64,000 nucleotides of DNA from Cyanophora paradoxa CCMP329 (Eukaryota; Plantae; Glaucophyta). The first letter of the stretch is position 1; each line of letters opens with the position of its first letter. Both the position numbers and the translations under genes were made by a program. Shown piece by piece: positions 7,880 through 56,385 of this stretch. Location of the stretch: assembly GCA_004431415.1 (NCBI GenBank), contig QPMI01000064.1:310001-374000 (forward strand), written 5' to 3'. The notes under the pieces are model-generated. The model saw nothing but the letters and a program-made list of their open reading frames with translations. It had not been told where the DNA came from and ran no database searches.

Positions 7880-8092
7880 CATTCAAGATGCTGTCATTGA
7901 TTCTACCGCCGTTCCGATGGGGCTTTGTGGAAAACAAACCTGCATGAATTCACAATTGACCGGCGCCCGCAGCACTGCGGCACGATTTATGTTGCCACAG
8001 GCATCGTCGACGGCGAGGAGACATCTCTTCAAGTCTCGGCCGTCGAAGGTGATCCCGAGGGCTTCAAATTCGAACTGCAGCCCTCGGAAGCA
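7880..8092 (+). CDS. Upstream exons of a hypothetical host gene interrupted by the element nest
   Basis: GIVDGEETSLQVSAVEGDPEGFKFELQPSEA ends at a phase-0 donor GTGAGG (8093); further exon-like sequence back to ~7520. Confidence 0.5.
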
Positions 8093-8182
8093 GTGAGGTT
8101 CCCGGTGGGGGATCCGAGCGTATTTGCAAGGGGGGAAAAGAAGACCGAAGGTCTCCCCCCCCTTGCTTCCCGTTCCCTCGCT

Positions 8183-8246
8183 TCAGGCGAAGCCTCTTTC
8201 AGGCGAAGCCTCTTTCAGGCGAAGCCTCTTTCAGGCGAAGCCTCTT
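8183..8246 (+). repeat. Four identical 16-bp units TCAGGCGAAGCCTCTT (5' termini of the rolling-circle element)
   Basis: Copies start at 8183, 8199, 8215, 8231; each begins TC and holds the hairpin AGGC-GAA-GCCT; GGCGAAGCCTC is the reverse complement of GAGGCTTCGCC near each body's 3' end. Confidence 0.95.
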
Positions 8247-9947
8247 TCTCAAACCCAAAAACCGACGATCTAAATTCCTTTTTTAACCTTTTTTTCCACT
8301 CAAGATCCCCCCTGCTTAATAATTTCCGTGTCGCACTCCCTCGAGGCAGAATTAATAATTCTGCCTCGACACGGACGCAATTGCTGCTAGTCACTCAGCC
8401 ACACGAACCCCCACAGACCTCTCTAGATCCATTTTTAGCGTCGTAGCTGCCCTAAGACGACCGCTCCCCCGTAGGCATCCCGCGAAAATCGAATTTCCCT
8501 CTGGATCAATTCCGGTACTTAACCTCCGACAAATGCAGTCCGAGTCCGAAGGTGGGACCGGTCCCGCCCGGTCCCGCGACGAAATCGCGCCAGGGACGCC
8601 CCAGAACGATACAGAATGACGCGCGAGGGCGAGCGCATCGCCGCAAGCTCGATTTCGGGCGCCGTCGACGCTCCAGTGCGAAGAGTCGGCCGAAAATTTG
8701 ATCCGGCCGGTTCCGGCCGGTCCCGCGACGCGCGCAATCCATGCGTACTGGCGCGTCCCCCCTGCTTAATAATTTCCGTGTCGCACTCCCTCGAGGCAGA
8801 ATTAATAATTCTGCCTCGACACGGACGCGATTGCTGCTAGTCACTCAGCCACACGAACCCCCACAGACCTCTCTAGATCCATTTTTAGCGTCGTAGCTGC
8901 CCTAAGACGACCGCTCCCCCGTAGGCATCCCGCGAAAATCGAATTTCCCTCTGGATCAATTCCGGTACTTAACCTCCGACAAATGCAGTCCGAGTCCGAA
9001 GGTGGGACCCGGTCCCGCCCGGTCCCGCGACGAAATCGCGCCAGGGACGCCCAGAACGATACAGAATGACGCGCGAGGGCGAGCGCATCGCCGCAAGCTC
9101 GATTTCGGGCGCCGTCGACGCTCCAGTGCGAAGAGTCGGCCGAAAATTTGATCCGGCCGGTTCCGGCCGGTCCCGCGACGCGCGCAATCCATGCGTACTG
9201 GCGCGCATAGACATAGCAGCGCCTGCGCACCCCCGAAATCCGCTTTTCGGAGCCGGAAGAGCGCAGGAAGGTACCCGACGGCAAAAATTCGATCCTAGAC
9301 AGGCCCGGAGATCTTTCCGCGCGCCCACGCCGCGGCGCATGCGCGGAACGATAGCATAAGCATTTGAGATGTAGACAAAGCATTCCGCACGCTTTACAGA
9401 TGCGCCGGACCGCGGGGACCCAGCCGACCCCGAAAATTCGATCCTTCACGGACCTGCACATCTTTCCGCGCGCCCTCGCATCCTCACGCGAGCGCATCGC
9501 TACAGTATTCAGTTGAGATCTTTTTAAAGCTTTTCGCAAGCTCTGCGGGCGCGACAGGGCACGAGAACCCAGCCGACGCAAAAATTCGATCCTGAACGGG
9601 CCTGCACATCTTTCCGCGCGCCCACGCCGCGGCGCATGCTCAGAGCTTTCCGCGCGCCCTCGCATCGTCACGCGAGCGCATCGCTACAATATGCATTTGA
9701 GATCGTTTTAAAGCTTTCCGCGAGCTCTGCGGGCGCGACAGCGCACGACAACCCAGCCGACGCCAAAAATTCGATCCTGGCCACGCCTGCACATCTTTCC
9801 GCGCGCCCTCGCCTCCGCAGCCCCGCACATCGATGCTATATGCATTCGCTGGCCAGTCGCTGAGTGCCCTATAGGCCTACTGTGACAGCCGCGAGGGCGT
9901 CCGCGAGGCTTCGCCGTACTTAGTGCTCCGCAGGAGCACGGATCTTG
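8247..9947 (+). mobile_element. Element body 1 (innermost copy in the nesting model)
   Basis: Starts TCTCAAACCCAAAA; subTIR 9905-9915, hairpin 9923-9939, ends ATCTTG at 9947. Confidence 0.85.
8306..9205 (+). repeat. Near-perfect ~450-bp tandem duplication inside body 1
   Basis: TCCCCCCTGCTTAATAATTTCC...TACTGGCGCG occurs at 8306 and again at 8756. Confidence 0.9.
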
Positions 9948-11661
9948 TCTCAAACCCAAAAACCGCCGATCCAAATTCCTTTTTTAACCTTTTTTTCCAC
10001 TCGAGATCCCCCCTGCCAAATAGTTTCCGTGTCGCACTCCCTCGAGGCAGAATTATTAATTCTGCCTCGACACGGACGCGATTGCTGCTGGTAACACAGC
10101 CACCCGAACCCCCACAAACCTCTCTAGATCCATTTTTAGCGTCCTGGCTCCCCTAAGACGACCGCTCGCCCGTGGGCGTCGCACGAAAATCGAATTTCCC
10201 TCTGGATCAATTCCGGTACTTAACCTCCGACAAATGCAGTCCGGGTCAGAAGGTGGGACCCGGTCCCGCCCGGTCCCGCGACGAAATCGCGCCAGGGACG
10301 CCCCAGAACGATACAGAACGGCGCGCGAGCGCGAGCGCATCGCCGCAAGCTCGATTTCGGGCGCCGTCGACGCTCCAGTGCAGAGAGTCGGCCGGAAATT
10401 TGATCCGGCCGGTTCCGGCCGGTCCCGCGACGCGCGCAATCGATGCGTACTGGCGCGCATAGACATACCAGGGCCTGCGCACCCCCGAAATCCGCTTTTC
10501 GGGGCCGGAACAGCGCAGGAAGGTACCCGACGGCAAAAATTCGATCCTAGACAGGCCCGGAGATCTTTCCGCGCGCCCGCGCCGCGGCGCATGCGCGGAA
10601 CGATAGCATAAGCATTTGAGATGTAGACAAAGCATTCCGCACGCTTTACAGATGCGCCGGACCGCGGGGACCCAGCCGACCCCGAAAATTCGATCCTTCA
10701 CGGACCTGCACATCTTTCCGCGCGCCCTCGCATCCTCACGCGAGCGCATCGCTACAATATTCTTTGACATCTTTTAAATGCTTTCCGGAACCTCTGTGGG
10801 CGCGACAGGGCACGAGAACGCAGTCGACGCAAAAATTCGATCCTGGACAGGCCCGGACAGCTTTCCGCGCGCCCACGCCGCGGCGCATGCACGGAACAAT
10901 AGCATAAGCATTTGAGATGTAGGCAAAGCCTTCCGCATGCTTTCCGTATGCGCCGGGCCGCGAGGACCCAGCCGACCCCGAAAATTCGATCCTGAACGGA
11001 CCTGAACATCTTTCCGCGCGCCGTCGCATCCCCTTGCATGCCCATCGCTACAGTATTCATTTGTGAGCTTTGTAAAGTCTTTCGCAAGCTCTGTGGGCGC
11101 AAAAAAGCACGAGAACCCGGCCGACGCCAAATTTGCGATCCTGCACAGCCCTGCACATATTTCCGTGCGCCCTCGCCTCCGCTGCTTTCCGCGAGCTCTG
11201 CGGGCGCGACAGCGCACGACAACCCAGCCGACGCCAAAAATTCGATCCTGGCCACGCCTGCACATCTTTCCGCGCGCCCTCGCCTCCGCAGCCCCGCACA
11301 TCGATGCTATATGCATTCGAGATTCTGTTTAAGCGATTCGCAAGCTCTGTGCACGCGCCTGGCCGCGAGAACCTCGCCCCTCCCGGGCCTCCTTCCCAAC
11401 AATATTATAAAAATAAACTCCTCTCAATCTAGATCTGCTCCACCCTTTATTTCCTCAGTACATTAATATTCGATCCTCTAGCCGGCCAGCGCTAGCTGGA
11501 CTAGCCGTCATGATCAGCCAGCCAGCTTCCAGCCAGAAAGCTGTTCGCGATCGGCCAGGCCGCTGGCCAGTCGCTGAGTGCCCTATAGGCCTACTGTGAC
11601 AGCCGCGAGGGCGTCCGCGAGGCTTCGCCGTACTTAGTGCTCCGCAGGAGCACGGATCTTG
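9948..11661 (+). mobile_element. Element body 2
   Basis: Same start and same 3' subTIR/hairpin/ATCTTG end as body 1; diverged internal ~140-150 bp repeats (core AAAATTCGATCCT). Confidence 0.85.
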
Positions 11662-13334
11662 TCTCAAACCCAAAAACCAACGAGCCAAATTCCTTTTTTA
11701 ACCTTTTTTTCCACTCGAGATCCCCCCTACTAAATAATTTCCGCGTCGCACTCCCTCGAGGCAGAATTATTAATTCTGCCTCGACACGGAGGCGATTGAT
11801 GCTAATAACACTGCTACCCTAACCCCCACAGACCTCTCTAGATCCATTTTTAGCGTCCTGGCTCCCCTAAGACGACCGCTCTCCCGTGGGCGTCGCGCGA
11901 AAATCGAATTTCCCTCTGGATCAATTCCGGTACTTAACCTCCGACAAACGCAGTCCGAGTCAGAAGGTGGGACCCGGTCCCGCCCGGTCCCGCGACGAAA
12001 TCGCGCCAGGGACGCCCCAGAACGATACAGAATGACGCGCGAGGGCGAGCGCATCGCCGCAAGCTCGATTTCGGGCGCCCTCGACACTCCAGTGCGAAGA
12101 GTCGGCCGAAAATTTGATCCCGTCGGTTCCGGCCGGTCCCGCGACGCGCGCGATCGATGCGTACTGGCGCGCATAGACATAGCAGGGCCTGCGCACGCCC
12201 GAAATCTGCTTTTCGGATGCCGATCAGTGCAGGAAGGTACCGGACATCAAACATTCGATCCTGCACGGGCCCGGACATCTTTCCGCGCGCCCACGCCGCG
12301 GCGCATGCGCGGAACAATAGCATAAGCATTTGAGATGTAGACAAAGCCTTCCGCATGCTTTGCGTATGCGCCGGGCCGCGACGACCCAGCCGACCCCGAA
12401 AATTCGATCCTCTTCAGACGTGAACAACTTTCCACGCGCCCTCGCGTCCTCACGCAGGCCGCATCGCTGGTATATTCATTTGAGATTTTATCAAAGCCTT
12501 TCACAAACTTCGAAGACGCGAAAGAGCACGAGAACCCAACCGTCGGCAAAAATTCGATCCTGCACGGACCCGGAGATCTTTCCGCGCGCCCACGCTGCGG
12601 CGCATGCGCGGAACAATAGCATAAGCATCTGAGATGTAGAGCAAGCGTTCCGCACGCTTTACAGATGTGCCAGGCCGCGAGGACCCAGCCGACCCCGAAA
12701 GTTCGATCCTCTTCAGACCTGAACAACTTTCCGCGCGCCCTAGGCCTCGCGTCCTCGCGCGTGCGCATCGCTACAATAGTAATTTGAGGTCTTTGTTAAG
12801 CTTTTCACGACCCCCGAGGACGCGACAGGGCGCGAGAATCCAACCGACCCTGAAAATTCGATCCTGCATGGACCTGCACGTCTTTCCTCGCGCCCTCGCC
12901 TTCGCAGCCCTGCACATCGGTGCTATATGCGTTCGAGATTCTGTTTAAGCGATTCGCAAGCTCTGCTCATGCGCCTGGCTGCGAGGACCTCGGGCTCGCG
13001 CGCCCCTCCCCGGCCTCCCCCCCAACATTATTATTTATATTAAATTAATCTCCTCTCAATCTGCTCCACCAGTAAAAACCAAGCGTTACCGGTCCAACTC
13101 CTCCCATAATTAATTATATATTCCCTCTCCTCATTACATTGCTCTCTGGCCAACCAGGTCTCCCTAGAGCTGGCTATAGCAGGCCAGCCCATGGCCAAGC
13201 CGGCGAAACCCGGACAGCTGGCCATGGGCGGGGCTGCAGCAGGCCGCCTACTGTGACAGCCCGGCGGCCGTGACTCAGTGAGGGCTTCCGCGAGGCTTCG
13301 CCGTACTTAGTGCTCCGCAGGAGCACGGATCTTG
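11662..13334 (+). mobile_element. Element body 3
   Basis: Same termini; internal ~140-150 bp repeat array. Confidence 0.85.
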
Positions 13335-13877
13335 TCTCAAACCCAAAAACGAACGGGTCCAAATTCCTTTTTTAACCTTTTTTTCCACTCGAGATCCCCC
13401 CTGCTAAATAATTTCCGTATCGACACTCCTCAAGCCAGAATTATTAATTCTCCCTCGACACGGACGCGATTGCCGCAAATAACACAGCTACTCCAACCCC
13501 CACAGACCTCTCTAGATCCATTTTTAGCGTCCTGACTCCCCTAAGACGACCGCTCTCCCGTGGGCGTCGCGCGAATATCGAATCGACGTGCAGAGTGCCC
13601 CTTATCGACGTGCAGAGTGCCCCTATCGCATTGCTTATCGCTTAAACTTCATTATACATGCAAGAGATACGTAAAGGAAGCTTATTACGACGTGTTCTGC
13701 ACGAGAAAAGGGCCCCCCGAATATTTTCTCGAGCAAAATTTTTTGAGCGTCCAGCCGAGACCAAAAAATTTAGTACCCCCCCGCGCTGCGGGAGCGCGTC
13801 TGTTAGCCCAGACGCGTGCACGTCTCTCACGTCAACCATCTGGATCGTAATCTGTGGCTCTAGACGAGCTTGAGCGT

Positions 13878-15032
13878 ATGCCGCGATCAGAGCAGAACCG
13901 GGCGACAGCCAACTTCGACCTTGCCCCGCTGCAGGCGGAGTGGCAGCGGCTGTTTCCGACTAGCGCTGTGCCATTGACAGTGCTCACGCTTGTTACTGTT
14001 GCGACCGTCGCCCAGCTCTATCCGCCAACCTTCAGTTATGCTAGCATCATTCCTCCGACTGCTTGGACCTTCTACACGCAGCCGGCCTTCGATGCGCTAC
14101 AGCAGCTGATCACTGAGCGTGTGAGCGCTCTTACCAGCGAGCCAGCGCATTCGGTCGCGCGCTGGGGTCGCGGTTTTCTTGTGATCTTCAGTAGTACTGC
14201 GCATTGTGAGCGGTTCCTGACATCGGTCGGTGCAGCTGGCCTCCAGTTGGCCGTTCCAGCCCTTGGCATTCTTGCGGCCGCTTGGATTGTCGGCCGTGAG
14301 CCGACGCCGCCGGCGGGCGGTCTGCCTCCTGACCCTGGCCAGCCGCCGCTTCAGCGCCCGCAGGGCCAGGATCACTGGATCTGGCTTGAGAAGTTTCAGC
14401 ATCGGCCCGATGAGGACCCTATCCGCCATTGGCTGGCGCAGCGCGGCCTGAAAGTCCGGCACATTCATTATCAGCAGCGGGGCATGCCAGCCGGGATTAT
14501 GAAGATCTATCTCTCTGAGCTGCCCCCGCTCGATGTGCAAGTTGCTCTTCCTAATACGGTTACCTTTGGCGACGGGCTTGAGCTTCGTGTGGCGGCCAGC
14601 TGGCGGGACTGCCGCCTGTATGGTTGCGGAGGCCGGCCTCACCTTCCTCATCCCCTAGCTGACCATCACCCCTCTCTCTCTGAATTTCATACCTCCAAAC
14701 TCTCCGCCGCGTCCACTCCGTCCTCAGCGTCCCGGCCTCAGAAGGCGGCCCGCAAGGAGACAGCCGCAGCTGGGCCCAGCGCAGCTGCAGATAAGCCTGC
14801 AGCTGATCAGTTTACTTATTCTTACCCAGCAACTGGCCCGCGTTGGACAGAGGCAACTGGTCCTATGGGCCTTGAGCTCTCCGCCCCGCCAGGGCCTGAC
14901 GGACAGCTCTCCAAGCCTGCCCACCGCATTGTCTTCCCCTTCAGGCCATTCTCCAAGCCCGGGCCGGGAAGGCCTCTGCCGCACCTCCCGCCCCCTCTGG
15001 CTCCGCTGGCGGCCCTTCGGACATGGCTATAG
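13878..15032 (+). CDS. LINE ORF1 (nucleic-acid-binding; RRM-like segments and a Cys/His motif)
   Basis: ATG 13878; RWGRGFLVIFSS and IWLEKF...GIMKIYL resemble RRM strands; CRLYGCGGRPHLPH; lies directly upstream of ORF2. Confidence 0.7.
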   Translation: MPRSEQNRATANFDLAPLQAEWQRLFPTSAVPLTVLTLVTVATVAQLYPPTFSYASIIPPTAWTFYTQPAFDALQQLITERVSALTSEPAHSVARWGRGFLVIFSSTAHCERFLTSVGAAGLQLAVPALGILAAAWIVGREPTPPAGGLPPDPGQPPLQRPQGQDHWIWLEKFQHRPDEDPIRHWLAQRGLKVRHIHYQQRGMPAGIMKIYLSELPPLDVQVALPNTVTFGDGLELRVAASWRDCRLYGCGGRPHLPHPLADHHPSLSEFHTSKLSAASTPSSASRPQKAARKETAAAGPSAAADKPAADQFTYSYPATGPRWTEATGPMGLELSAPPGPDGQLSKPAHRIVFPFRPFSKPGPGRPLPHLPPPLAPLAALRTWL

Positions 15033-15508
15033 ACCCGGTGAGCTCTTTCTTTTTGTTCAGATCTAATAGGGGTGTACAGTTGGTGGCCCCCCGGCTGCGC
15101 TGCAGTTGGGGTTGTGGACTGCCAAAGCTGCACTGCAGCTGCGGCATGATGCCAAGGCTGCGCTGCAGCTGCGGCACCTTGAACTTGCAATTGTTCTGAT
15201 CTGGGCTTTAAAACTGGATTACTGTTTAAATACGATGCATAGACATCTCATAAATTGGCACTCTTATTACTTTTTTCAACTCGCCCTCACCTTGTTTCTG
15301 AGCGCAGCCCGCTGGCCTGCCCACGGAGATGACGAACATGCAGATCGCTGCCGCCGGCCGTACAATTCCAACACGCGTTCGGGGTGCCGGTTCTGGCACT
15401 GGTGCCGGTTCTGGCACTGGCAAGTAGGGTCGTCTCGTATTTTGCCCTTCTTCAATTTAAGCTTGTACATAGTTTTCTCTGGATTCTTTAAACCACCGTG
15501 ATCATACT

Positions 15509-18500
15509 ATGGCCATCAATATTGTCTCCCTGAACGTTGCAGGGAAATTAGTAGGAGACACAAGCTTCTGTGCTTCACTTGGTATGCACCACGTTGATTA
15601 TCTCCTTAAGTGTGCTCGTGAACAGTCTCGCAAATCCATAGTTTGTTTACAGGAAACTCACGTATCGAGTAAAGTAGACGCTGCTTTTCTGAAAGGCAAG
15701 TGGGGGCTACCCCTTCGTACTGGGCTTTCAATCCAGAAGTTGCCAGTCAAGGTGTAGCTACTCTCTTCCCTAATAAGCGATTTAGCATTACCTCGCTAGC
15801 TCCTGCACAGAGTTCCCGGCTGCAGCTGTTCCTGTTGCGCTCTGGAACTGTAAATATTTACCTGTGCAACATTTACGCACCTGTTCAGGATGCTGAACGG
15901 TTAGGCTTCTACGAGACATTGTGTCATACTCTGGAGTCGGTCGTTCCTGTGGGGTCCCATTTAATCTTATGTGGTGATTTTAACTTTCACCTTTTGCCTT
16001 CTGACGCGAACAGTACTTCGGGGCGGGTGTCGCCCCCTGCATCCTTTGAAGCGGTTTGCTCGCAATATCAACTCCAGGATGTTGCATCGCTTTGTACGGA
16101 TGAGCGCCGGTCTAATCGATTTAAAACGTTTTATCGGACTAATGCCCAGGCAGCCTCGGGGCCGTCGAATCTCGTCTAGATTATTTCTTTGTCTCTCAAT
16201 CCCTACTCGCATGGAACCCAGTGCTCGTCCCATGGATGAAATACACTTCCAGACATCTTGATAGGCCTCTTTCTGATCACATTGGAATTCAACTCACGCT
16301 GTCCCCTCCAGTTCATCAGCGTGGGCCGGGTCGCTGGAAGATGCGATGGGACCTTTATGGGAAGAACCCAGCGTATCTCGCTGAAATTCGGAAGGTTTTT
16401 CAGATGTGGCGTGCTGAGTGGCCTTCGCCTGCATCCGATTCTATTCTTCGCTTCGAAGCTCTTAAACGGTATCTACAGACTGCTCTCTCTGCGTGGGAGT
16501 CGACTGAGCGGCGCAAGAATAAGTCGGCTTACTGGTCTGCCATGAAACGTCTCGAACGTCTCATCACCGCCTATTCGCAGGGCGAGATCTTACGGGACAG
16601 TTTCTTGAGTGGCCGCTCTGCTCTTTATAGAGAGCTGCGGGAGCGCATGCCTCAAGTGTGTAGGGCTGCCGTTCAAGCTGACTCGCTATTCTCAAGTCAG
16701 AACGAGGCCACATCGAGGCGGGAGTTTTTCACTCATTATTTCGGAACTGCTGAGCAGGAGACCGGATGTGAGAATAAACTCCGGCCGGCCAACACCCGGA
16801 TCCCTCTTATGCTTCTGATAATCCCTTTGTGCTTATGACGTTGTCGGCAGCTCATTTCGCTGATTTATACGATGGTCAGCAAGCTCAAAGTGTGGTGGCG
16901 GCGCATCGTGATGAACGGGCTGAATGTGCGTCACTGTATGCGCCTTATAAACTCATTCCGCGGGAGGCCGTGGATCTCGATACCCCACTGGCCGCCTATG
17001 AATTGTTGCAATCGTTTAAGGATATATCTGGGCTTAGAAAATCCCCTGGACTTGATGGTTTAGTACCTGAATTTTATAGTACTTTCTGGGGCGACATTGG
17101 TCCAGATTTTATGGAATACCTTAAGGCTATGCATAATCGGAAGGCGGCCCCTGGCTCGCTACGAGATATCCTCATTGTCCCAATTCCGAAACCTGGTACG
17201 GATGCGACTTTGGTCACTAACCGTCGGCCTATCTCTCTATCGAATGTAGAGGAGCGAGCAGTCGAGCGGGCATTATCTAACCGCTTGACCCCTATCATGC
17301 CCCGCTTAATATCAAAATATCAGTCGGGTTTTATCACCAAACGTTCTGCGGTGCATCAATTTATGCTCGTATATTTATTGATGTATTATGAGGGGGATAA
17401 TCCCGATCTCGAGGAACTTTGTTTGGGGTTCCTTGATTTCTCCAAAGCCTATGATCGGGTGAATTGGGAGTTTCTTTTCTGGACCTTGAATCAATATGGA
17501 TTTGGGTCATACTTTACTGACTGGGTCCGTCTTTTGTATTCTGATCTGTCGGGATGATCCATATTAATGGCTGGACAACGCCTCGGTTTCCCATCCGGTG
17601 CGGAGTCCGGCAGGGTGGTCCTCTATCGCCATATCTATATAATTTGTGTGCGCATCTATTAATCATGTTAATCGATACTGAACCCCGTATACGCGGGGTG
17701 CAAATTTCTGGGCGGTCCATATGCAAGGTCCTCCAGTTTGCTGATGATACTGTTCCCTTATTGCCTCCTTTGCGGAATTCCCCATTTGGGACGCTCTCAT
17801 TAAGAAATTTCAACGGTTAACAGGGGCGAAAATTAATCTCGAAAAATCGCATATACTACCCATGCACTCACATTTATCTCTTCCACCTGATTGTCCTTTT
17901 GAGCGTATGAAGGTTGATCCTTCTGAGATTTCCGCAGATGCCAAGATCGCCAAATATCTCGGGTTCCCTCTGGAGCTAGTGCATGACCGGTTTTGGAATA
18001 AAAAGACTGCTGCTCTCGTTCTGCGCGCACAGTCAGTTAACCGGAATCGGATGCCTCTACGCTCTGGTGTTTTACTTGCGTGGGCTGCTATTGTGGGATC
18101 ACTACATTATCCGCTGTATATTTTAGAACCGGGAGGTGATCGTTATAAAGCTTGGAGTAATTTAATCCGCAACTTTTCGGGTGTACGCGGCTCCGTATCT
18201 ACATATGTTACGGCGCTTCCGTTTAAAGACGGTGGATTAAATTGCCCAGATATTGTTACGTTTTCGCTGGCTTTAAAATCTAAATGGCTTGCCTTCCTTA
18301 ACGACCCGGCCTGTTCAGCTCCTTGGAAGGAATATATTCAATACCAAATAGACCGTCAGTTGGCTCCATTCTCTTATGCTAATGTCATTTTGGGGCTTGA
18401 TGTGTCTGCCATCTTGCCAAGATTGCATTTGCCACCGCTTTGGCAGATGCTGTTTGAGGCGTGGCGAGATCGTCAAGCCGTTGCATCTCCTACAACCGTG

Positions 18501-19860
18501 CATCAAATTTTGACCCAGCCTATTTTTCTTAATCCTTTATATGTTCTTCCTAGTGACATTGCAGCACAGACACATACTGAGTTTGCGAGAGCCGGTGTAC
18601 AGCGCGTCGCTGACATTTGGGATGTACAGTTGCACCGATTTCGTGCTCCCCTGCAATGCTAGTTGATTATACTGCTGCCTTTGATCAAATTTGTCGTGCC
18701 CTGCCATCCAGTTGGCTTACAACGCTTACTGCTAATGCCGTACCGGAACGTTTCTTATGGTATAAATCGAAAGATGATAAATATGTGTATCTGAGGGGTC
18801 CCTCGGGCTTTTTTGTGGCCTTCCCTCTTTTTGAAGGTGAGATTGTCCCACGGGTGTTGGATTTCGTCCCGTGGCCCCGTGGCCGCCCTCCAGATCCGCT
18901 CTTGTACCCTGGCGTACCAGCTGGCCTCTTGCCGCTTCATGTGCTCTCCTCCCAGTATTTTATTTCTTTGCGCAGAGGTTCGCGTCCAATTCTGGTTTCG
19001 CTTGGCACGGGTTCGACAGCTACGCTTTCCTACAGCAATTTTGCTTTCACATTCGATAAGATGCTCACGCTTCAGGGCTTTTCTGTTCGGCGCTTTTACC
19101 AGCTCGAGGTACAGCGACTGTGGCGGGTGCGGAGTAGGGCTAAGATGCCTTCAGAACACTGGGGTCTGGATCTCCCTCTTAATCGCGTGTCTCAGCTCGT
19201 CGCCCTTCGTGCCTTTCCTATGCTGTGGCTCGATGTCCTCTTCCGTCTCCGATATAAGGCTTTCCCATCTTTACAACGGCCGCCGGTCGCGGCTATTTTC
19301 TGCCGCGCTTGTAATGATGGGCAGCATCGTTCAGTGCGGCACGTTTTCTTTGATTGCCCTGTGGTGCAGGGTTTTTGGCGGGCCATGCATGCTGAGCTCA
19401 CATCCTTAGCAGAGGCTTTGCCCGAGGACGTGCAGCCCTCTTTACCATTGCCTCCTATTACGTTCTCCGCTATTCTAGATCCACAAGTTCCCGGTGTTGC
19501 GGGGACATTGATCACATCTTCTGTGGATGCCGATTTCTGTGTTCGGTATCTCGGTTATATTTTGGCGGGCATTTACGCAATTTTCAGCTGTCCCGTGCAT
19601 ATCTCTCACCCGATAATTTACTTGCTGAGCGGGTACCAGTGTACTCCGTTAATGCTCTGCTAAACCTGTGGAAACGTTTTCTGGATATTCTCGAGATTAC
19701 GTTGCCTCCTGCTGTCGAGCGCATTGAGCTTCTTCGTTTACGGCATTTAGGGGAGGGCTCTGATTACGATGGTTCAAACCCTGAGTCACGTGACCGCCCT
19801 AGCCCCCCTCAATCTATTTTTGATGCGAGCTTCTTTTCTGTGCGCGGAGCTATCCCTCTA
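15509..19860 (+). pseudogene. LINE ORF2: AP endonuclease + reverse transcriptase + CCHC zinc finger, broken by ~7 frameshifts
   Basis: APE motifs SLNVAG, CLQETH, NIYAP, GDFN, SRLDYFF, SDH; RT motifs KSPGLDG, RPISLSN, QSGF, LDFSKAYDRV, GVRQGGPLSP, FADD, KYLG; GGLN; CRACNDGQHRSVRHVFFDC. Confidence 0.95.
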
Positions 19861-21463
19861 CAGCGCTCGGGCCCCCAGCAGTCGCGGTCCCGGGCCCCCT
19901 GCAGTCGCTACCCCTAGGCCTGCTGCTACAGTTAATGGCGTCGGCGTGAATCCTCAAGTTCAGCACATTGCGAGGCCATCTGCTAGCGCTGATACAGCTT
20001 CGGTCCCGGCTCCCTCGAGTTCTCGTTTGAGCTCGTCTGCCGATGCTAGCGCTAGCGCCGCTTCTGCCTCCACATTAATATGCCCTATTTGTGGGAAGAA
20101 CTTTCAGTCTTCTGCTGATCGTGACCGTCATGTTCGGGCTGATAAACATCCTGCTAACGCCCGTGGCGTTCGCCGACCTCGAACCCCCTCTAGTTCAGAG
20201 AATCCTCCAGATCCTGTGCCTCCTGCCCAGCGCCCCCGCCTCCAGTCTCCGGATCCGGCACCCCCAGTGCTTGCTCCAGCTCCTGCAGCTGCGGCTACAT
20301 ATGCCGAGCCCCGTCAGCCTGTTCCGACTTTGCGACGGATTCGCTCCCCTGCACCCTCACCGTCGCCACCTGCTCAGCGGCTCCGTACTTCCCTGCCCCC
20401 CCCTAGTCCTTCTCTGATACCTTCCGTTTCACGAATCCGCCGCCCCCGGTCTCCGTCGAATTCAACCTTGCCTCCCGATGCCGATCCGTCCCCTGTCCAT
20501 GTGTCTCGGCGCCTGCGGCTTTCCTCTCCTGTACCTTCGGCTTCCCCTCTGGCTGTCCCGCCAGATCCACCTCGCCCGCCGGTTCCTGCATGGCCCCCTT
20601 TGATTCATGATAGTCTTGTATCAATCTTCGCTTCACCTCAACTTAGTTTACCCTCAGTTGTTTTGCCGTCACCTCCATCAGATGCTTCATCGATGTTAGT
20701 TAGGAGCACTGGCCCCCTCCACCTTCCAGTTCCTCGTGTATTCCATGCCTTCCCTGTACCTTTGATTCCGTTCCCTTTGTCGTTAGCTCTGCCTCTTCCT
20801 CCTCCATCTCTCACTGTTAGCCCTCAGGCAGTTCCGCCTCTTTATCTTCAGCGACCGTCAGACCGTATAGTTTTTGGCAGCGAGTATTTTGTGTATGGTG
20901 ACGTTCCTCGTGTGTACCCTTCTCTCTCTTCTACTTCGCTATATTTGCCTCTCCCGCCTGGTTCAGCCCCATCGTCTGCCTTCCCTGTCACTACTGGCTT
21001 GCGTTTCGCCCCTCCTCTTATACTGCCGATTCCGAGTCTGCACCCGAGCTCTGCCCCTTTCCTCGTGTCGTCCCCAGTTCCTCAGATTAGTCTTCAGCCG
21101 TCCATTGTTTTACCAACTCTACAATCTCGATTCCGTTTAGACACTCCGCCAGCTTCGACTTTCCCCTCTAGTGGTGTCCTACGTTTCGCCTCTCCTACTG
21201 TTCTACCGCCTTTGCCTCCTGCGACTACGTCTTCTAGTTCTGCTGTTAGCTCTGTCTTGTCGTCTTCGTCTAGATCTTCGTCTTCGACTGTAGTTCCTCG
21301 TGCTCGTTCTCCTTATTTGCTGCGTCCCCGTGCTCCTCGTCGTTCTAGTGTGACTAGTACTTCTGCATCGACGCCCTTGAGCTCTTCTACTCCTTCTCTT
21401 CGTGCTCGTTCTCCTTATCTTTTGCGTTCTTCTGATCGTGTCCCTTCTCGTGATCCCTCTTGA
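19769..21463 (+). CDS. Pro/Ser/Arg-rich ORF with one C2H2 finger (ORF3, or the frameshifted tail of ORF2)
   Basis: 564 open codons inside the LINE; CPICGKNFQSSADRDRHVRADKH; RARSPYLLR twice near the end. Confidence 0.75.
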   Translation: MVQTLSHVTALAPLNLFLMRASFLCAELSLYSARAPSSRGPGPPAVATPRPAATVNGVGVNPQVQHIARPSASADTASVPAPSSSRLSSSADASASAASASTLICPICGKNFQSSADRDRHVRADKHPANARGVRRPRTPSSSENPPDPVPPAQRPRLQSPDPAPPVLAPAPAAAATYAEPRQPVPTLRRIRSPAPSPSPPAQRLRTSLPPPSPSLIPSVSRIRRPRSPSNSTLPPDADPSPVHVSRRLRLSSPVPSASPLAVPPDPPRPPVPAWPPLIHDSLVSIFASPQLSLPSVVLPSPPSDASSMLVRSTGPLHLPVPRVFHAFPVPLIPFPLSLALPLPPPSLTVSPQAVPPLYLQRPSDRIVFGSEYFVYGDVPRVYPSLSSTSLYLPLPPGSAPSSAFPVTTGLRFAPPLILPIPSLHPSSAPFLVSSPVPQISLQPSIVLPTLQSRFRLDTPPASTFPSSGVLRFASPTVLPPLPPATTSSSSAVSSVLSSSSRSSSSTVVPRARSPYLLRPRAPRRSSVTSTSASTPLSSSTPSLRARSPYLLRSSDRVPSRDPS

Positions 21464-21535
21464 TTCTGTATATATTTTGTGCTAGTTTACTGTATCTTTG
21501 ATTTGTGATTGCTTTGTTGTCTTTAATATCACTAC

Positions 21536-21560
21536 CTACGGGGGGTTCGCCCCACCGTAG
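21536..21560 (+). other. LINE 3' UTR stem-loop just before the poly(A)
   Basis: CTACGG-GGGG-TTCG-CCCC-A-CCGTAG: 10-bp stem with one bulge and a UUCG loop. Confidence 0.7.
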
Positions 21561-23164
21561 TCTCTCAAAAAAAAAAATTTTGCAAAAAATTTTACAAAAA
21601 ATTTTGTTTTATTTTTCGAAAAATTTTTCGGCCGGAACCCTGACCCGGTCCCGCCCGGTCCCGCGACGAAATCGCGCCAGGGACGCCCCAGAACGATACA
21701 GAATGATGCGCGAGGGCGAGCGCATCGCTGCAAGCTCGATTTCGGGCGCCCTCGACGCTCCAGTGGGAAGCGTCGGCCGAACATTTGATCCGGCCGGTCC
21801 CGTCCGGTCCCGCGACGCGCGCAATCGATGCGTACTGGCGCGCATAGACATAGCAGGGCCTGCGCACGCCCGAAATCCGCTTTTCGGAGCCGGAACAGCG
21901 CAGGAAGGTACCCGACGGCAAAAATTCGATCCTGCACAGACCCGGGCAACTTTCCGCGCGCCCGCTCCGCGGCGCATGCGCGAAACAATAGCATAAGCAT
22001 CTGAGATGTAGACAAAGCGTTCCCCACGCTTTGCAGATGCGCCGGGCCGCGAGGACCCAGCCGACCCCGAAAATTCGATCCTTCACGGACCTGCACGTCT
22101 TTCCGCGCGCCCTCGCATCCTCACGCGAGCCCATCGCTACTATATTCATTTGGGATTTTATCTAAGCCTTCCACAAGCTTCGAAGACGCGAAAGAGCACG
22201 AGAACCCAGCCGGCGGCAAAAATTCGATCCTGCACGGGCCCGGACATCTTTCCGCGCGCCCACGCCGCGGTGCATGCGCGGAACAATAGCATAAGCATTT
22301 GAGATGTAGAAGAAGCTTTCCGCACGCTTTACAGATGCGCCGGGCCGCGGGGACCCACCCGACCCCGAAAATTCGATCCTTCACGGACCTGCACATCTTT
22401 CCGCGCGCCCTCGCATCCTCACGCGAGCGCATCGCTACTATATTCATTTGACATCTTTTAAATGCTTTCCGCAACCTCTGTGGGCGCGACAGGGCACAAC
22501 AACGCAGCCGACGCAAAAATTCGATCCTGAACGGGCCTGCACAGCTTTCCGAAGTTCCGCGCGCCCTCGCCTCCGCAGCCCTCCACATTGATGCTATATG
22601 CATTCGAGGTTCTGTTTAAGCGATTCGCAAGCTCTGCGCATGCGCCTGGCTGCGAGAACCTCGCCCCTCCCGGGCCTCCCCCCCAACAATATATTAATAT
22701 TAAATTAATCTCCTCTCAATCTGCTCCACCAGATAAAAGCAAGCGTTACCGGTCCAACTCCTCCCCTAATTAATTATATATTCTGTCTCCTCATTACATT
22801 GCTCTCTGGCCAGCCAGCTCTGCCTCGAGCTAGGTATAGCCTATTATAGCGGGCCAGCAATATTATATAATTAATCTCCTCTCAATCTGCCCCACCAGTT
22901 AAAAGCCAGTCCAACCCCTCCCCTAATCATATATTCCCTTTATTTCATCAGTACATTAATATTCCTCCATGGGCCACTGGGCCGGGCCAGTACTAGCGGG
23001 GCTGCCGCAGTGCAGCTGGCCGCCAGCTTCCGGGGCCAGTGCTGTTCACTGAGTCACGATCGGCTCGGCCGCTGGCCCGTGCGCTAGGCCTACTGTGACA
23101 GCCGCGAGGGCGTCCGCGAGGCTTCGCCGTACTTAGTGCTCCGCAGGAGCACGGATCTTGTCAG

Positions 23165-25289: not shown

Positions 25290-26475
25290 TCAGGCTCCCT
25301 CCGCCCGCGGCGCCGAAATGCGGGGAGGCCCGCACCAAGCGAGAGAAGGGCGGCAGCAGCCGGGGCCGCCCCCGCCTCGAGGGCCCCGCGAGTCGGGCTC
25401 CGTGCGCCCGGCCCGTCGCGCGAGGCGCGGAGCCGAAAGGCGGGGAGGCGCGCACCAAGCGAGAGAAGGGCGGCAGCGGCCGGGGCCGCCCCCCCCTCGA
25501 GGGCCCCGCGAGTCGGGCTCCCTGCGCCCGCCCCGTCGCGCGAGGCGCGGCGCCGAAAGGCGGGGAGGCCCGCACCAAGCGGGAGAAGGACGGCAGCGGC
25601 CGGGGCCGCCCTCGCCTCCGAGGCTCGAGGGCACGAAGACTCGGGCACCCTGCGCCCGCCCCGTCGCGCGAGGCGCGGCGCCGAAGGGCGGGGAGGCCCG
25701 TACCAAGCGAGAGAAGGGCGGCAGCGGCCGGGGCCGCCCCGCCTCGAGGGCCCCGCGAGTCGGGCTCCGTGCGCCCGGCCCGTCGCGCGAGGCGCGGAGC
25801 CGAAAGGCGGGAGGCGCGCACCAAGCGAGAGAAGGGCGGCAGCGGCCGGGGCCGCCCCCCCTCGAGGCCCCGCGAGTCGGGCTCCCTGCGCCCGCCCCGT
25901 CGCGCGAGGCGCGGCGCCGAAAGGCGGGGAGGCCCGCACCAAGCGGGAGAAGGACGGCAGCGGCCGGGGCCGCCCTCGCCTCCGAGGCTCGAGGGCACGA
26001 AGACTCGGGCACCCTGCGCCCGCCCCGTCGCGCGAGGCGCGGCGCCGAAGGGCGGGAGGCCCGTACCAAGCGAGAGAAGGGTGGCACCGGCCGGGGCCGC
26101 CCCCGCCTCGAGGGCCCCGCGAGCCGGGCTCCCTGCGTTTCGGCGCCGCGCCTCGGGCGGCAGCGGCCGGGGCCGCCCCCGCCTCGAGGGCCCCCGAGTC
26201 GGGCTCCCCGCGTTTCGGCGCCGCGCCTCGGGCGGCAGCGGCCGGGGCCGCCCCCGCCTCGAGGACGCGAAGAGTCGGGCTCCCTGCGCCCGCCCCGTCG
26301 CGCCAGGCGCGGCGCGGAAAGGCGGGAAGGCCCACACCAAGCGAGAGAAGGGCGGCAGCGGCCAGGGCCGCCCCCGCCTCGAGGGCGCCGCGAGTCCGGC
26401 TCCCTGCGCCCGCCCCGTCGCGCGAGGCGCGTCGCGGAAAGGCGGGGAGGCCCGCACCAAGCGAGAGAAGGGCCT
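25290..26475. repeat. GC-rich ~120-bp tandem repeat, about 10 units, with a ~365-bp higher-order period
   Basis: Recurring CACCAAGCGAGAGAAGGGCGGCAGCGGCCGGGGCCGCCCC; variant GAGGGCACGAAGAC at ~25628 and ~25991. Confidence 0.9.
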
Positions 26476-41559: not shown

Positions 41560-42150
41560 TAAATTTCAAAACGGCGAATCAAAGCAAATCAGCAACTAAG
41601 CTATAAGATCTACACCGCATCGGCACTCGAGCTCGCTACTACTACTGAGTCGCTAGCTGTGCTCGCTGTACGTCACTCGCTGTCAGGCTCGGGGTCCTTG
41701 CGGGGCCATCCCCTCCTCCTGGCGCCCTTCAGGGGAAGCGGCGGCGTCTGCGGCGAAGCGGGGCGGGGCGGAGCGGGGTGCGGGGGTGAGCAAGTCAACG
41801 AAGTGAGGTGGCTCTGGTCCGGCGCCAGCGCCAGCTCACCAGCATCAAGGGGGGTAGAGACTCGGGCTCGGGGGCCTCCCCACCCAGGCCCAGCTCCTCC
41901 AGGGGTACGGGCGGCTCCTCGCAGGGCTGCGGGGGTACGCGATGAGACTCTTAGGAGAAACCTGAGAAGGCAGGGGGGGGTACGGCACCCTGAGGAGGGA
42001 GCGGAAGTTGGAGTACTCGTCGACGGAGGTGCGGGCGACTCGTTCGGCGAAGGCCGAATCGGAGGGGGAGAGGGCCGACGACAGGGAGACGCGGGGGGTA
42101 CGGGGTTTCGAAGAATCCGGGTCGGAAGGGGAGGAGGAGTCCGGGGGCTC
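41560..42150 (-). pseudogene. Displaced partial copy of the mTERF 3' end and its 3' flank
   Basis: Closely matches ~49018-49581 (GGCTCGGGGTCCTTGCGGGGCC...GAAGAATCCGG); upstream exons absent. Confidence 0.85.
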
Positions 42151-42490
42151 GGGATCCGGGCTCTCATATCTAGAGTTTCCCTCTGGACAAATGATCGAGC
42201 TCTAGATCTCGATTTCGATCATGTCTGAGGGGTGGCCTCCTAGGCCTTAGGCATCCGAGCTCTCACCACGTGCACGCCCCGCCCCGCCGCAGACTGCGGC
42301 AAAAGTCGAAGCCCCCGCTTCTCCTGAAAGGCACCGCAAGTTCCTCCTGCCTTCCTGCCAAATTTAAAACGTGCATGTGGTAGCTAGAGGAATGTGCGAT
42401 ATATACATCTTTTGCTTCGGCGGCGAATTAATTGAAATCTACGACAAATTAAAACAAATTATATGTAAACAGTAACCAAAGGAGTGAACG

Positions 42491-48710: not shown

Positions 48711-49095
48711 GCCGCGCGCCCGCGCGCGCGCGCCGAGATCGGCCGGCGCCGCAGCCGATGCTCAAACGCTAGCTGCTGAGCTTATGATCTGCCTGCCGAT
48801 CCTCGATCGCGAGCGATCCTCTAAAGCTCCAGCAGTAGGTTCGGCGACCCTATAGCTCTTGCAATTGCAAGCCTAGCGCCTGTACCCCCGACCACGGGCC
48901 CGGCGCCGCGCCGCGCGCGGCTCGCGATCGCGGCGTGCTGCGGGCAAGCCTTGATCATGAAGGCTTGTCGCTGTCGTCAGTGTGCGTGAGCTCCAGCGCC
49001 CGGGCCGGCGGCGGCTTCAAAATTTCAAGAGATTCAGCATCTAAGCTATAATTATATAAGATCTACTCGCTAGCTATAGCTATGCTTGCTGTTTG

Positions 49096-51832
49096 TCACT
49101 CGCCGTCAGGCTCGGGGTCCTTGCGGGGCCACCCCCTCCTCCTGGCGCCCTTGAGGGGAAGCGGGGGCGTCTGCCGCGAAGCGGGGCGGGGCCGAGAGGG
49201 GTGCGGGGGTGACTCAGTGAGCGGGGACAAGGTGACTCAGTGGGGTGGCTCTAGATCTGGCCCGGCGCCAGCTCACCAGCATCAAGGGGGGTAGAGACTC
49301 GGGCTCGGAAGCCTCCCCACCCAGGCCCAGCTCCTCCAGGGGTACGGGCGGCTCCTCGCAGGGCTGCGGGGGTACGCGATGAGACTCTTAGGAGAAACCT
49401 GAGAAGGCAGGGGGGGGTACGGCACCCTGAGGAGGGAGCGGAAGTTGGAGTACTCGTCGACGGAGGTGCGGGCTACACGCTCGGCGAAGGCCGAATCGGA
49501 GGGGGAGAGGGCCGACGACAGGGAGACGCGGGGGGTACGGGGTTTCGAAGAATCCGGATCGGAAGGGGGGGAGGAGTCCGGGTGCTCAGGGGCCGGGCTC
49601 AAGTTCGGGTCCCGGCCGAGGGCCCTAAGGTACTCCAGGCGGGGGCGGATGCGGGAGGGGAGGGAGTACGCCAGCGTGGGGGGGAAGCGGACGATCTGGG
49701 GGTACGGGTTACCCAGGGTCGGAAGAAGGGACGAAGGGGGGGTACGGGGTGCGCGGACCTCCTGGGGCCCGTACCCGTGGGAGCGGAGGAGCCGAATCTT
49801 CGGCTCGAGGTTCGCGGCGGGATCCAGGACGAGGATCTGAGGGGAGGGGGAGGGGGGCGGTCGCCTAAGCGGGGATTGGGGGATGAAGGGGGGGGGGAAT
49901 AAGCAGGGGTAGAGTGACCTGCGGCGAGGCGCGGACGAGGGCGGAGAGGTCGGGCCCGAGGAAGCCACGCGATTTGAGGTACCGCAGGCTGGGGGTACGC
50001 GAGTGAGAAGCGGGAAGGAAAAAGGGGGGGTGGGGGTGAAGGGGGTACCTTCGTTCGAGGCCGACTCGGGAGCGGGCGAGAAGCGGGGGGAACTTGACAA
50101 TCACCTGAGGGGCGGGCCGTGCGATTAGGAAGAGAAGTGAAAATGACTCCGGGCGGATTCGAACCTGAGCAAGGTCGTGCCGGGAGAGGGCGGCGTGGTA
50201 CGCAAGAGCGGCGATGGAGGGCCGTACCCCCGTCTCGAGGGGGCGGAGGAACGCCATGGGGGCCCGGCTGAGAATCTGAAGAAAGCGGCGGGCAGGGGGT
50301 ACGGATTAAAAGGGCGGGGGCGGTGGGGCGGGGGGTACGCGGCGCGCCTTGGCGATCGCGGGGCCCTGGAGCCCCAGGCCCTCGAAGAACGTGACCTGGG
50401 GTACGCCGTTCAGCTTCTGGGGAGTTGGAGGGGGGGTACGCCTGAACCTTGAGGAGGAAGGTCCGCTCAAGGGAGCGGCAGAGCAGCTCGGGGTACCGCC
50501 TCACCACGCGGGCGGCCTCGGATCGGCTCAGCCCGAGGGCCTTCATGTACGTGATCTGGGGATGGCAAGGGCAGCAAGGGGGTACACGGTGTGATTATTC
50601 AGGAGGGGACGAACGGGAGGGGGGTACGACGCACCCGCTCGCTTAGCCCCTCGGTACGCATACCGAGTATAAGGGGCTGCCGCTGGATCATGCGGAGGAC
50701 GCAAGGGCTGAGGAAGGGCGATCAGGGGGTACGACGAAGAGGAAAGAAGGGGGTACGGCGCACGGGTCGAGGGAGAGCTCCGATTGGAGGAGGGATGACA
50801 GGGCCTGGAGGCGCCCGCTGGAGGCTAGGGAGAGCAGCTTCGGCTGCGAAAGAAGCGAGGGGCAATCAGCGAGGGGGAGGGAGGGGTGGCGCTGCAAGAA
50901 AGGAGGGGGGGGGAAGGAGGGGGGGGGGTGGAGGTTCGGCGCACGTGGCGGGCGATGAGGCGGCGCGCGGCGTCGGGGGCGAGGCCGGCGCGCTCGAGGG
51001 CGGCCGCCGACTCGGACATGGCGCCCTCGCTGAGGCCGACGGTGCGCGTGGAGAGCAGGAGCCGCGCGGGTTCGACTCCGAAGCGCTCCCGCGCGAAGCG
51101 GAGCCGGTCGTGGAGCGTCTCCTCGCGTACCCAGAGCACGTGCAGGTCGGCGCGGAGGAGGCCGGCGGTCTCGGGCCCCGTCAGCCCGGCGCCGCGCAGC
51201 AGCTCGATCTTGCGGCGGAGGCGGGCGGGCCCCATGGCGAGGACGCGCGGGGAGGCGGGGAGCGCCGCCGCCAGCTCGGGGGCGCTGAGACCGGCGGAGG
51301 CGAGGGCGTCGGCCGAGGGGCGGAGCTCGGCGTCGACGCTGAGGCGGGCGAGGCCAGGGAAGGCGGCGAGGCAGCGATCGACGTCCGCGCGGCTCATGCC
51401 GAGCTCCCGCGTGAGGAACAGCTCTGCCTCCGAGGCCGGGGCGCGCTTGCTCCGCGGCCTTCCGCGCTTCCGCGGCGCGGCGGGCTGCTCCGCGGGCACG
51501 GCCGAGGCGCCGCGCGGGCCCGCGTGCGGGGGCACGCGCAGCTGCAGTGCTCCGCCGACGAAGAAGCGGGGAGGCCGCTCGACCGGCGCCCGCACAGATC
51601 GCCCGTGGAGGAAGATTGGCGAGCGCAGCGGGGAGGCCAGCGACTCGGGGCGCAGCAGCGGGGAGCGGAGGGAGAAGGCTGCCGGCGAGGAAGGGGCCGG
51701 AGTGGCGCGCGGCGGGCCGGGTGCGCCTCCGATGAAGCCGGCCACCCGCGTTCGCGAGGGCGGGCCCAGCGCGCGCGCCGATGGCAAGGTGGCCGCCGGC
51801 GGCGGCGGTGGGAGCGCCGCTGCCGGGGACAT
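49096..51832 (-). CDS. mTERF family protein with organelle transit peptide
   Basis: mTERF repeats ELGMSRADVDRCLAAFPGLARLSV, ALGLSRSEAARVVRRYPELLCRSLE, NLEPKIRLLRSHG, IVRFPPTLAYSLPSRIRPRLEYL; Pro/Ala/Arg-rich N-terminus with FIGG, FLHG, FFVGG. Confidence 0.88.
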
Positions 51833-55100: not shown

Positions 55101-56385
55101 ACGGGCCTGTACGGCGGCACCTTCCCTCGCGGCGACGGCACGTTCGCCATCGGCGACGGCGACGGTGAGCGCGCGCGGGCGCACCTGTCCGCGCGACGCC
55201 GGCCACGGCCCCACGCTAACACACGCACGCGCGCGCGCGCAGCCAATCTTGACCGGTGGGAGTTCGTCGACTGCAGCACGAACAAGGACGAGGACGTCAC
55301 CACCTCGGAGCCGTCGACCAGCACCGCGCCAACGACAAACACGTCCGAGCCAACGAACAGCACCGAGCCGACAAGCACGACCGAGCCAACGAACAGCACC
55401 GAGCCGACAAACACGACCGAGCCAACGAACAGCACCGAGCCGACAAACACGACCGAGCCAACGAACAGCACCGAGCCAACGACAAACACGACCGAGCCAA
55501 CGAACAGCACCGAGCCGACAAACACGTCCGAGCCAACGAACAGCTCCGAGCCGACGACCAACACCGAGCCGGCGACCACCGAGCCGACGACCACCGAGCC
55601 GGCGACCACCGAGCCGACAACCACCGAGCCGGCGACCACCGAGCCGACAACCACCGAGCCGGCGACCACCGAGCCGACGACCACCGAGCCGACGACCACC
55701 GAGCCGACGACCACCGAGCCGACGACCACCGAGCCGGCGGGTCCGACGGCGGAGGAGCTGGCGGCGGCGGCGGCGGAGCTGGCCAAGGCGCGCACGTACC
55801 TGGACAATTCGACGTACAAGGCCCTCACGACCCCCGCGGACAAGCTCGCGTACATCCTCATGTACGCCTACCGCGAGCGGCACGACTACGTGGGCGAGGA
55901 GGACGTCTGGGACGCCCTCTTCCCGGGCAAAACCGAGGTGAGCGGCACCCCGCATCCGCTTTTGGCTCCGTTCCCGTTCCGCGGATCGTGCTGACGGGCG
56001 GGCGGCGCCCGACGAACAACAGGTCACGCTGGCGGAGGTCATTACCGCGCTCAGCTCGGCGGCGTACCCGATCGTGACGCGCATGGGCACGCGCCTGCCC
56101 GGCGTCTACGACGGCTCCGTGGCGCGCGCGGACGGCACCTTCGCCGTGGGAGACTCGGACGGGCTCCTCGACAAGGCGGAGTTCCTGAGCGTGGCGACCA
56201 AGGTTGCGGCGGCGCGCCTGGATGAGGAGGCGCAGACGGTGTCCGACTCGGCCCTCAACGTCGTCGCCGGCGACGCGTACGTCGACACGGCCGACGTCGT
56301 CGTTGACAGCGACGAGATCGACCTCGTCGAGGCCGCCGGCGGCGCGCCCGCCGACGGCGGTCCCGCCGCCGAGGCGTCCGCGTAG
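52163..56385 (+). CDS. Large acidic protein: beta-rich N-half, Ser/Thr and Thr-Glu-Pro repeats, two ~95-aa EF-hand-like modules
   Basis: Clear GT-AG exon chain with strong GC3 bias; duplicated module DKLA...DY.G...VWD.LFPGK..VT..E.I...YP....MG.R..G.Y.G...R.DGTFA.GD.D..LD..EF; TAG 56383-56385. Confidence 0.75.
55300..55735 (+). repeat. Coding minisatellite (TEPTNS/TEPTNT 18 bp; TEPTT/TEPAT 15 bp)
   Basis: Tandem ACCGAGCC(A/G)AC units, in frame. Confidence 0.9.

Follow-up and report, generated by a model that had tools for sequence, protein, structure and literature searches.

Helitron2 elements share a recognizable plan, with asymmetric inverted repeats, hairpins at both ends, a T start and insertion at T|T/C, where the bar marks the point of insertion (PMC3627910; PMC11417382). 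Beyond the dinucleotide, how Helitrons choose and join their targets is poorly known. In fungi, Helitron2 copies have been described in which the first 31, 65, 73 or 85 nt are repeated, a pattern that was explained by self-insertion (PMC5148889, Fig. 7). In Metarhizium acridum, three tandem copies lack their 5′ termini and their 3′ ends run into the same sequence (PMC5148889, Table S9), and up to five 5′ termini have been found on one copy of a Fusarium Helitron2 (PMC13342296).

Here we describe an array of related elements in the glaucophyte alga Cyanophora paradoxa CCMP329, located within a 64,000-nt stretch of contig QPMI01000064.1 (positions 310,001 to 374,000, forward strand; hereafter the window). 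A preliminary description did not recognize the architecture of this array, in which all 5′ termini precede all bodies, from described families, but stacked 5′ ends attributed to self-insertion have been published (PMC5148889, PMC13342296). The array is an unusually clean apparent example of the self-insertion already described in fungi, with a strong insertion hot spot.

Layout of the array and ends of the element

The 16-nt 5′ terminus of the element, or head, is matched exactly four times in the window, at 8183, 8199, 8215 and 8231; the fifth match carries 3 mismatches, a level at which about 0.9 matches are expected by chance. The four identical heads are followed by exactly four diverged bodies, each beginning at element base 17, and in this respect the coordinates of the preliminary description were confirmed exactly (Table 1). 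Bodies 2 to 4 directly adjoin the complete 3′ end of the preceding body, with no head between bodies. Peeling off one head and one body at a time from the inside outwards gave an intact element at every step (1717, 1730, 1689 and 9842 bp), and the sites reconstructed in this way read CTT|TCTC three times and lastly CGCT|TCAG(CC), which reproduces the empty site that had been proposed. There is no target-site duplication around the nest.

Table 1 Features of the array and its surroundings (positions within the window)
Feature	Position	Strand	Remarks
Left flank of the outer insertion	8175–8182	+	joins 23161 as T|T, without target duplication
Four identical 16-nt heads (5′ termini)	8183–8246	+	T start, hairpin at nt 3–13, inverted repeat at nt 4–14
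Body 1, innermost, inferred newest	8247–9947	+	149-bp repeats, tandem duplication, deletion near 3′ end
3′ terminus	9905–9947	+	identical at 11619–11661, 13292–13334 and 23118–23160
Body 2, sister of body 1	9948–11661	+	149-bp central repeats
T run about 44 nt into body	9990–9996	+	elsewhere in the genome, candidate for a second and rarer point of self-insertion
Body 3, internally most divergent	11662–13334	+	
Body 4, outermost, inferred oldest	13335–23160	+	interrupted at 13584–21641
Insert in body 4, 8.06 kb	13584–21641	+	foreign sequence of about 250 bp, interrupted by a non-LTR retrotransposon, in place of 61 bp of the body
Non-LTR retrotransposon (LINE), 7.8 kb	13772–21571	+	AP endonuclease, RVT_1, weak zf-RVT, A tail

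The unit of head and body measures ~1.7 kb and is non-coding; body 4 reaches 9.8 kb because its insert stands in place of 61 bp. The LINE within that insert is flanked by a candidate 9-bp target duplication and its frames are broken in several places, which could partly reflect assembly errors. In a protein search that sees only proteins of similar length, its first ORF had no match and the piece carrying the reverse transcriptase had two distant ones, at about 30%; a host exon from the window likewise had none.

The ends of the element are well defined. An 11-bp, perfect and asymmetric pair of inverted repeats links the head to a segment lying 43 to 33 nt before the 3′ end. The hairpin of the head (4-bp stem, GAA loop) is built on the 5′ repeat and is weak when taken alone (z −0.06), and it is on this hairpin that the claimed cut, 3 nt downstream, was confirmed. 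All four bodies share the same 3′ terminus, in agreement with the inverted repeat and hairpin originally noticed there: the 11-bp repeat is followed by a 7-nt spacer, a hairpin with a 7-bp stem and a GCA loop (z −2.0) and an 8-nt tail ending in CTTG. As in other Helentron-type elements, the element boundary is ambiguous by one T. Central tandem repeats of 149 bp were found in all four bodies (2.4–3.6 copies per match).

Judged by these ends, the element has the ends of a ~1.7-kb non-autonomous Helitron2/HLE2 element of HINE-like type. The inverted repeats form the 11-bp perfect pair expected of Helitron2/HLE2, a 3′ hairpin lies just downstream of the 3′ repeat, and a 5′ hairpin is present, with the repeat starting at nt 4, one base beyond the range of 0–2 bp stated for the group. 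Insertion at T|T/C without target duplication was recovered at all four reconstructed sites, each of them T|T; no actual empty site at a paralogous locus was seen. The central tandem repeats between conserved flanks are typical of HINE/DINE-1 elements, whose autonomous partners carry an AP endonuclease fused to RepHel; no microsatellite follows the 5′ inverted repeat in the 5′ part of any body. The CTRR 3′ end and A/T insertion of Helitron1 are not seen, the end being CTTG and the sites T|T. We also considered the body alone, with its TC start and CTTG end, as a Helitron1-like unit, and rejected this reading because the sequence that exactly matches the 3′ inverted repeat lies in the 16-mer. 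No Helitron domain was detected among the 86 plus 10 ORFs of the window that were scanned, and no transposase in the window; family membership is therefore assigned by the DNA ends alone.

Around the array, the sequence upstream in the left flank is itself a multi-copy repeat. We also asked whether the left flank might be the head of a different family built on this geometry, but its hairpin lies 28 nt off and this candidate was unsupported. A search of Rfam gave no match between positions 7000 and 25000.

Divergence and copy number of the bodies

Pairwise identity of the bodies is 87–93% over the first 250 columns and 91–96% over the next conserved block. About 16% of the internal columns vary, as against none of the first 16 and none of the last 48 body columns, and the heads are identical as well. 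Such invariant termini on diverged bodies would have a probability of about 1e-6 under decay in place, and we therefore conclude that selection preserved the ends as the lineages transposed.

Bodies 1 and 2 are sisters, sharing 31 informative sites as opposed to 3 and 2 for the other pairings, and are identical over about 230 nt on the 3′ side; successive insertions from one young lineage and local conversion or duplication both explain this relationship. Body 1 additionally carries a 450-bp tandem duplication (8306–9205), whose two copies agree at 448 of 449 aligned bases, and close to its 3′ end some 240 bp are missing.

The family as a whole is abundant, being present in contigs of four independent runs, in every bin, at depths of thousands compared to roughly 125 for the shallowest contigs of run X1. 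For the body types, we relied on contig depth. In three runs, the matches listed for a segment specific to body 1 (9646–9712), single in the window, were contigs without differences, at a depth of 1251, 215 and 362. This amounts to about 7–11 times a rough single-copy estimate in the three runs (among the matches listed), and the body-1 alleles at 8445 behave similarly. Roughly, then, contig depth among the matches listed corresponds to about 10 identical copies of the innermost body type; such copy numbers are rough because the single-copy depth was taken from the shallowest contigs, and the depths sum overlapping contigs. The multi-copy depth of the body-1 type could also come from collapsed tandem copies. 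The body-2 allele at 10023 was absent from the contigs among the matches listed. Taken together, the copy depth of body 1, the missing body-2 allele and the LINE in body 4 fit, weakly, an array with its newest member inside and its oldest outside. Elsewhere, a metagenome scan for the head followed by TC returned 22 matches, none of them with the body start, the inverted repeat or the hairpin, which is the chance level, and the 3′ end had no match in viral contigs.

Probable repeated insertion between bases 16 and 17

From the one locus examined, we consider it likely that the array is a four-deep nest built by repeated insertion at T|T between element bases 16 and 17. This reading is favoured because heads and bodies are exactly complementary, the joins are T|T without duplication, the termini are invariant and the innermost body type is multi-copy. 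In such a scenario, a first ~1.7-kb copy would have landed at an ordinary T|T site. Judging from Helitron biology in general, a RepHel HUH transposase whose gene lies elsewhere would act on the element in trans, release a single-stranded or circular copy and join it into a nick at T|T. Three more copies, from other subfamilies, would then each have split the T|T formed by bases 16 and 17 of the innermost resident, again without target duplication. Every event would part the resident, with its 16-nt head ending up on the left of the newcomer and its body on the right, leaving four heads followed by four bodies with, presumably, the oldest outside.

The cut falls at a T|T that lies 3 nt past the head hairpin. 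One unit contains 102 TT and 17 TTTC on its top strand; if T preference were the sole guide, three insertions would hit a single TT|TC site with a probability of about 6e-4 given the first insertion, with the rest of the genome uncounted. The order of four heads and then four bodies would itself arise with a probability of 1/6 if any site after a head were equally usable, so that a requirement for the downstream body sequence is no more than a possibility. The body–body junctions share downstream sequence with the used site, but a G replaces the T there, and these junctions were unused.

Repeated use of this position was part of the preliminary description and stands on the complementarity, the T|T joins and the invariant ends. 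Among the matches listed, contig joints connect a complete 3′ end (9947) to position 9992, at depths of 329 in run X1 and 110 in run X17, and position 9992 to a head (8182 side) at a depth of 151 in run X4, although the letters between the joined pieces are not known. These joints suggest that a small number of copies have gone into the T run that lies about 44 nt from the body start. Base 16/17 would accordingly be preferred rather than exclusive, because the contigs suggest a second, rarer site at about +44.

With the hot spot 3 nt beyond the origin hairpin, the simplest cause would be a transposase sitting at the resident's origin and using the nearest T|T. Most likely, the transposase would occupy the head hairpin and inverted repeat of the resident, its normal origin, and target the T|T that comes first in the 3′ direction. 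Alternatively, the incoming 3′ repeat might guide insertion by base-pairing with the resident 5′ repeat. In a model fold these repeats form a stable pair, but the geometry would place the incoming 3′ end near base 1, not base 16. A stronger proposal, in which the transposase actively homes to the resident 5′ hairpin, by binding or repeat pairing, and integrates at a fixed 3 nt beyond it, strikes us as possible but doubtful.

Other histories of the array have to be weighed against serial insertion. Self-insertion at base 16/17 might be combined with movement of whole nests or multi-head units, which would run from the first head to either the first 3′ end or one further on, part of the array having been assembled elsewhere or on extrachromosomal circles; fewer than three events would then be local and the heads would miscount local insertions. 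Multi-head composites have demonstrably transposed in Fusarium (PMC5148889, Fig. S11), but they are unneeded here, where head and body counts are equal, and the copy number seems to differ between bodies 1 and 2, which fits separate arrivals. We hold a composite origin to be unlikely. The same considerations bear on the proposal that the 16-mer counts insertion events: the count matches at this locus, but the 16-mer is an unreliable general counter given that composites transpose in Fusarium and that a second site is suggested.

Likewise unlikely, in our judgement, is an array made by local amplification, in which one or two insertions were followed by slippage that multiplied the 16-mer and by unequal crossing-over or rolling-circle replication that multiplied the body, the equality of four heads and four bodies being a coincidence. 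Local duplication does happen in this family, as seen in the 450-bp duplication of body 1 and the 149-bp repeats, and body 1 has body 2 as its sister, the two agreeing fully in their 3′ parts. Yet two independent processes would have to hit the same number, bodies of 87–96% identity with invariant termini are not produced by decay in place, and body-1-type sequence is multi-copy. A rolling-circle concatemer inserted once would moreover put heads between the bodies. We rejected a head-to-tail concatemer on this ground and because the bodies are only 87–96% alike rather than near-identical, and a crossover between a circle and a resident at base 16/17 was likewise rejected, as it would yield head-to-tail units. 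That the assembly itself duplicated heads or bodies seems to us very improbable. Contigs cannot resolve a 16-bp array, but the exposure to such an error is limited to the head count, since the bodies can be told apart by their sequences, indels and inserts, and the usual assembly error is collapse, not diversification. Serial insertion between bases 16 and 17 thus remains our preferred reading.

Implications and relation to described elements

If insertion strongly favours a point at a set distance from the hairpin that marks the element's own origin, target choice would be linked to origin binding. If the transposase does home to residents, a eukaryotic HUH transposase would be using a DNA tag of 16–20 nt as its landing pad, and the order in which subfamilies were active would be recorded in the nests. 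Targeting itself would give the element a harmless place to land, and self-insertion would offer a route from transposon to satellite-like array. The intact nest might also represent the preserved intermediate that explains stacked 5′ ends in fungi.

In its structure, the element resembles Helitron2/HLE2 in the T start, the 11-bp asymmetric repeats, the hairpins at two ends and insertion at T|T/C (PMC3627910; PMC11417382). It differs in that the 5′ repeat starts after 3 nt, or after 2 nt when the first T is assigned to the target, and in that the outer site is not TTTT|T. With HINE/DINE-1 elements, as far as the available text of two papers goes, it shares a non-coding body, subterminal inverted repeats, a 3′ stem-loop, central repeats of ~150 bp and a TT target (PMC4067079; PMC7492417), whereas it lacks a microsatellite behind the 5′ repeat. 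For HINE/DINE-1, the available text of these papers gave no instance of fixed-site nesting (PMC4067079; PMC7492417).

Rolling-circle Helitron arrays and dimers formed by double insertion of transposable elements are likewise tandem copies of one family at one locus (PMC12628747). Those structures consist of several long 5′ parts with one 3′ end, or of full head-to-tail copies (PMC12628747), whereas in Cyanophora all 3′ ends are kept, the heads are stacked apart and the copies come from different subfamilies. In the open-access literature we found no report of such a structure in Cyanophora, no other fixed-site case and no intact nest with matched heads and bodies of different subfamilies at a 16-nt offset.

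The closest parallels are FoHeli1 and FoHeli2 of Fusarium oxysporum, which have asymmetric inverted repeats, a 3′ hairpin and stacked 5′ termini; FoHeli1 further resembles the head of the Cyanophora element in its TCAG start and GAA-loop hairpin (PMC5148889). The repeated heads in Fusarium measure 31–85 nt, mostly several on one body, in contrast to an offset of 16 nt used three times in Cyanophora. Unlike FoHeli1 and FoHeli2, the present one is a non-coding element of a glaucophyte alga, and it forms an intact nest from which no body has been lost. Even the repeated insertion site has a precedent, because the M. acridum triple shows the same pattern of headless bodies. Since self-insertion near the 5′ end had already been published, the Cyanophora array provides a sharper case of a known process rather than a new class of element.

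A rearranged copy of the family and the left flank of the nest

A contig from sequencing run X4 joins body position about 195 of the Helitron2-type element (window 8442) back to head base 4 (8186), with 3 nt of microhomology at the joint. The joint comes from a family member at another place in the genome whose 5' part is rearranged. To the left of the nest, the flank at 8080-8182 is a multi-copy repeat in its own right, and contig depth over it in run X1 was about 9,600-17,800, where the shallowest contigs have a depth of roughly 125. Nearly all copies of this repeat in the contigs carry T at 8155, and positions 8126-8166 fold into a long, GAA-looped hairpin.

The insert in body 4

In the outermost body of the nest, 61 bp are replaced by an A/T-run-rich sequence that hosts a LINE (Table); it begins with a 22-bp tandem pair at 13584, and no second copy was found elsewhere in the window. 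The reading frames of the LINE are interrupted at several points. Its 393-codon first ORF had no homologue in a protein search that sees only proteins of similar length, and its last frame, of 570 codons, is low-complexity with a weak C2H2 finger. A strong hairpin directly precedes the A tail.

Table. Inserted, repeated and coding-repeat features of the window
Feature	Position	Description
A/T-run-rich sequence hosting the LINE	13584-13771 + 21572-21641	~250 bp; within body 4
Non-LTR retrotransposon (LINE)	13772-21571	AP endonuclease, RT and weak zf-RVT domains
GC-rich tandem array	25306-26473	period about 120 bp, higher-order period 364 bp
Dispersed 510-bp repeat, two copies	41654-42163 and 49077-49600	91% identical
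Thr/Glu/Pro/Asn-rich coding repeat	55308-55736	period 15-18 and 75 bp

Other repeats and host genes

All six frames are open across the GC-rich tandem array. The exon upstream of the coding repeat had no homologue in a protein search with the same length restriction; the repeat itself is part of a protein that is probably mucin-like. Some of the window ORFs scanned for protein domains belong to host genes and encode ANF_receptor, histone-fold and zf-MYND domains.
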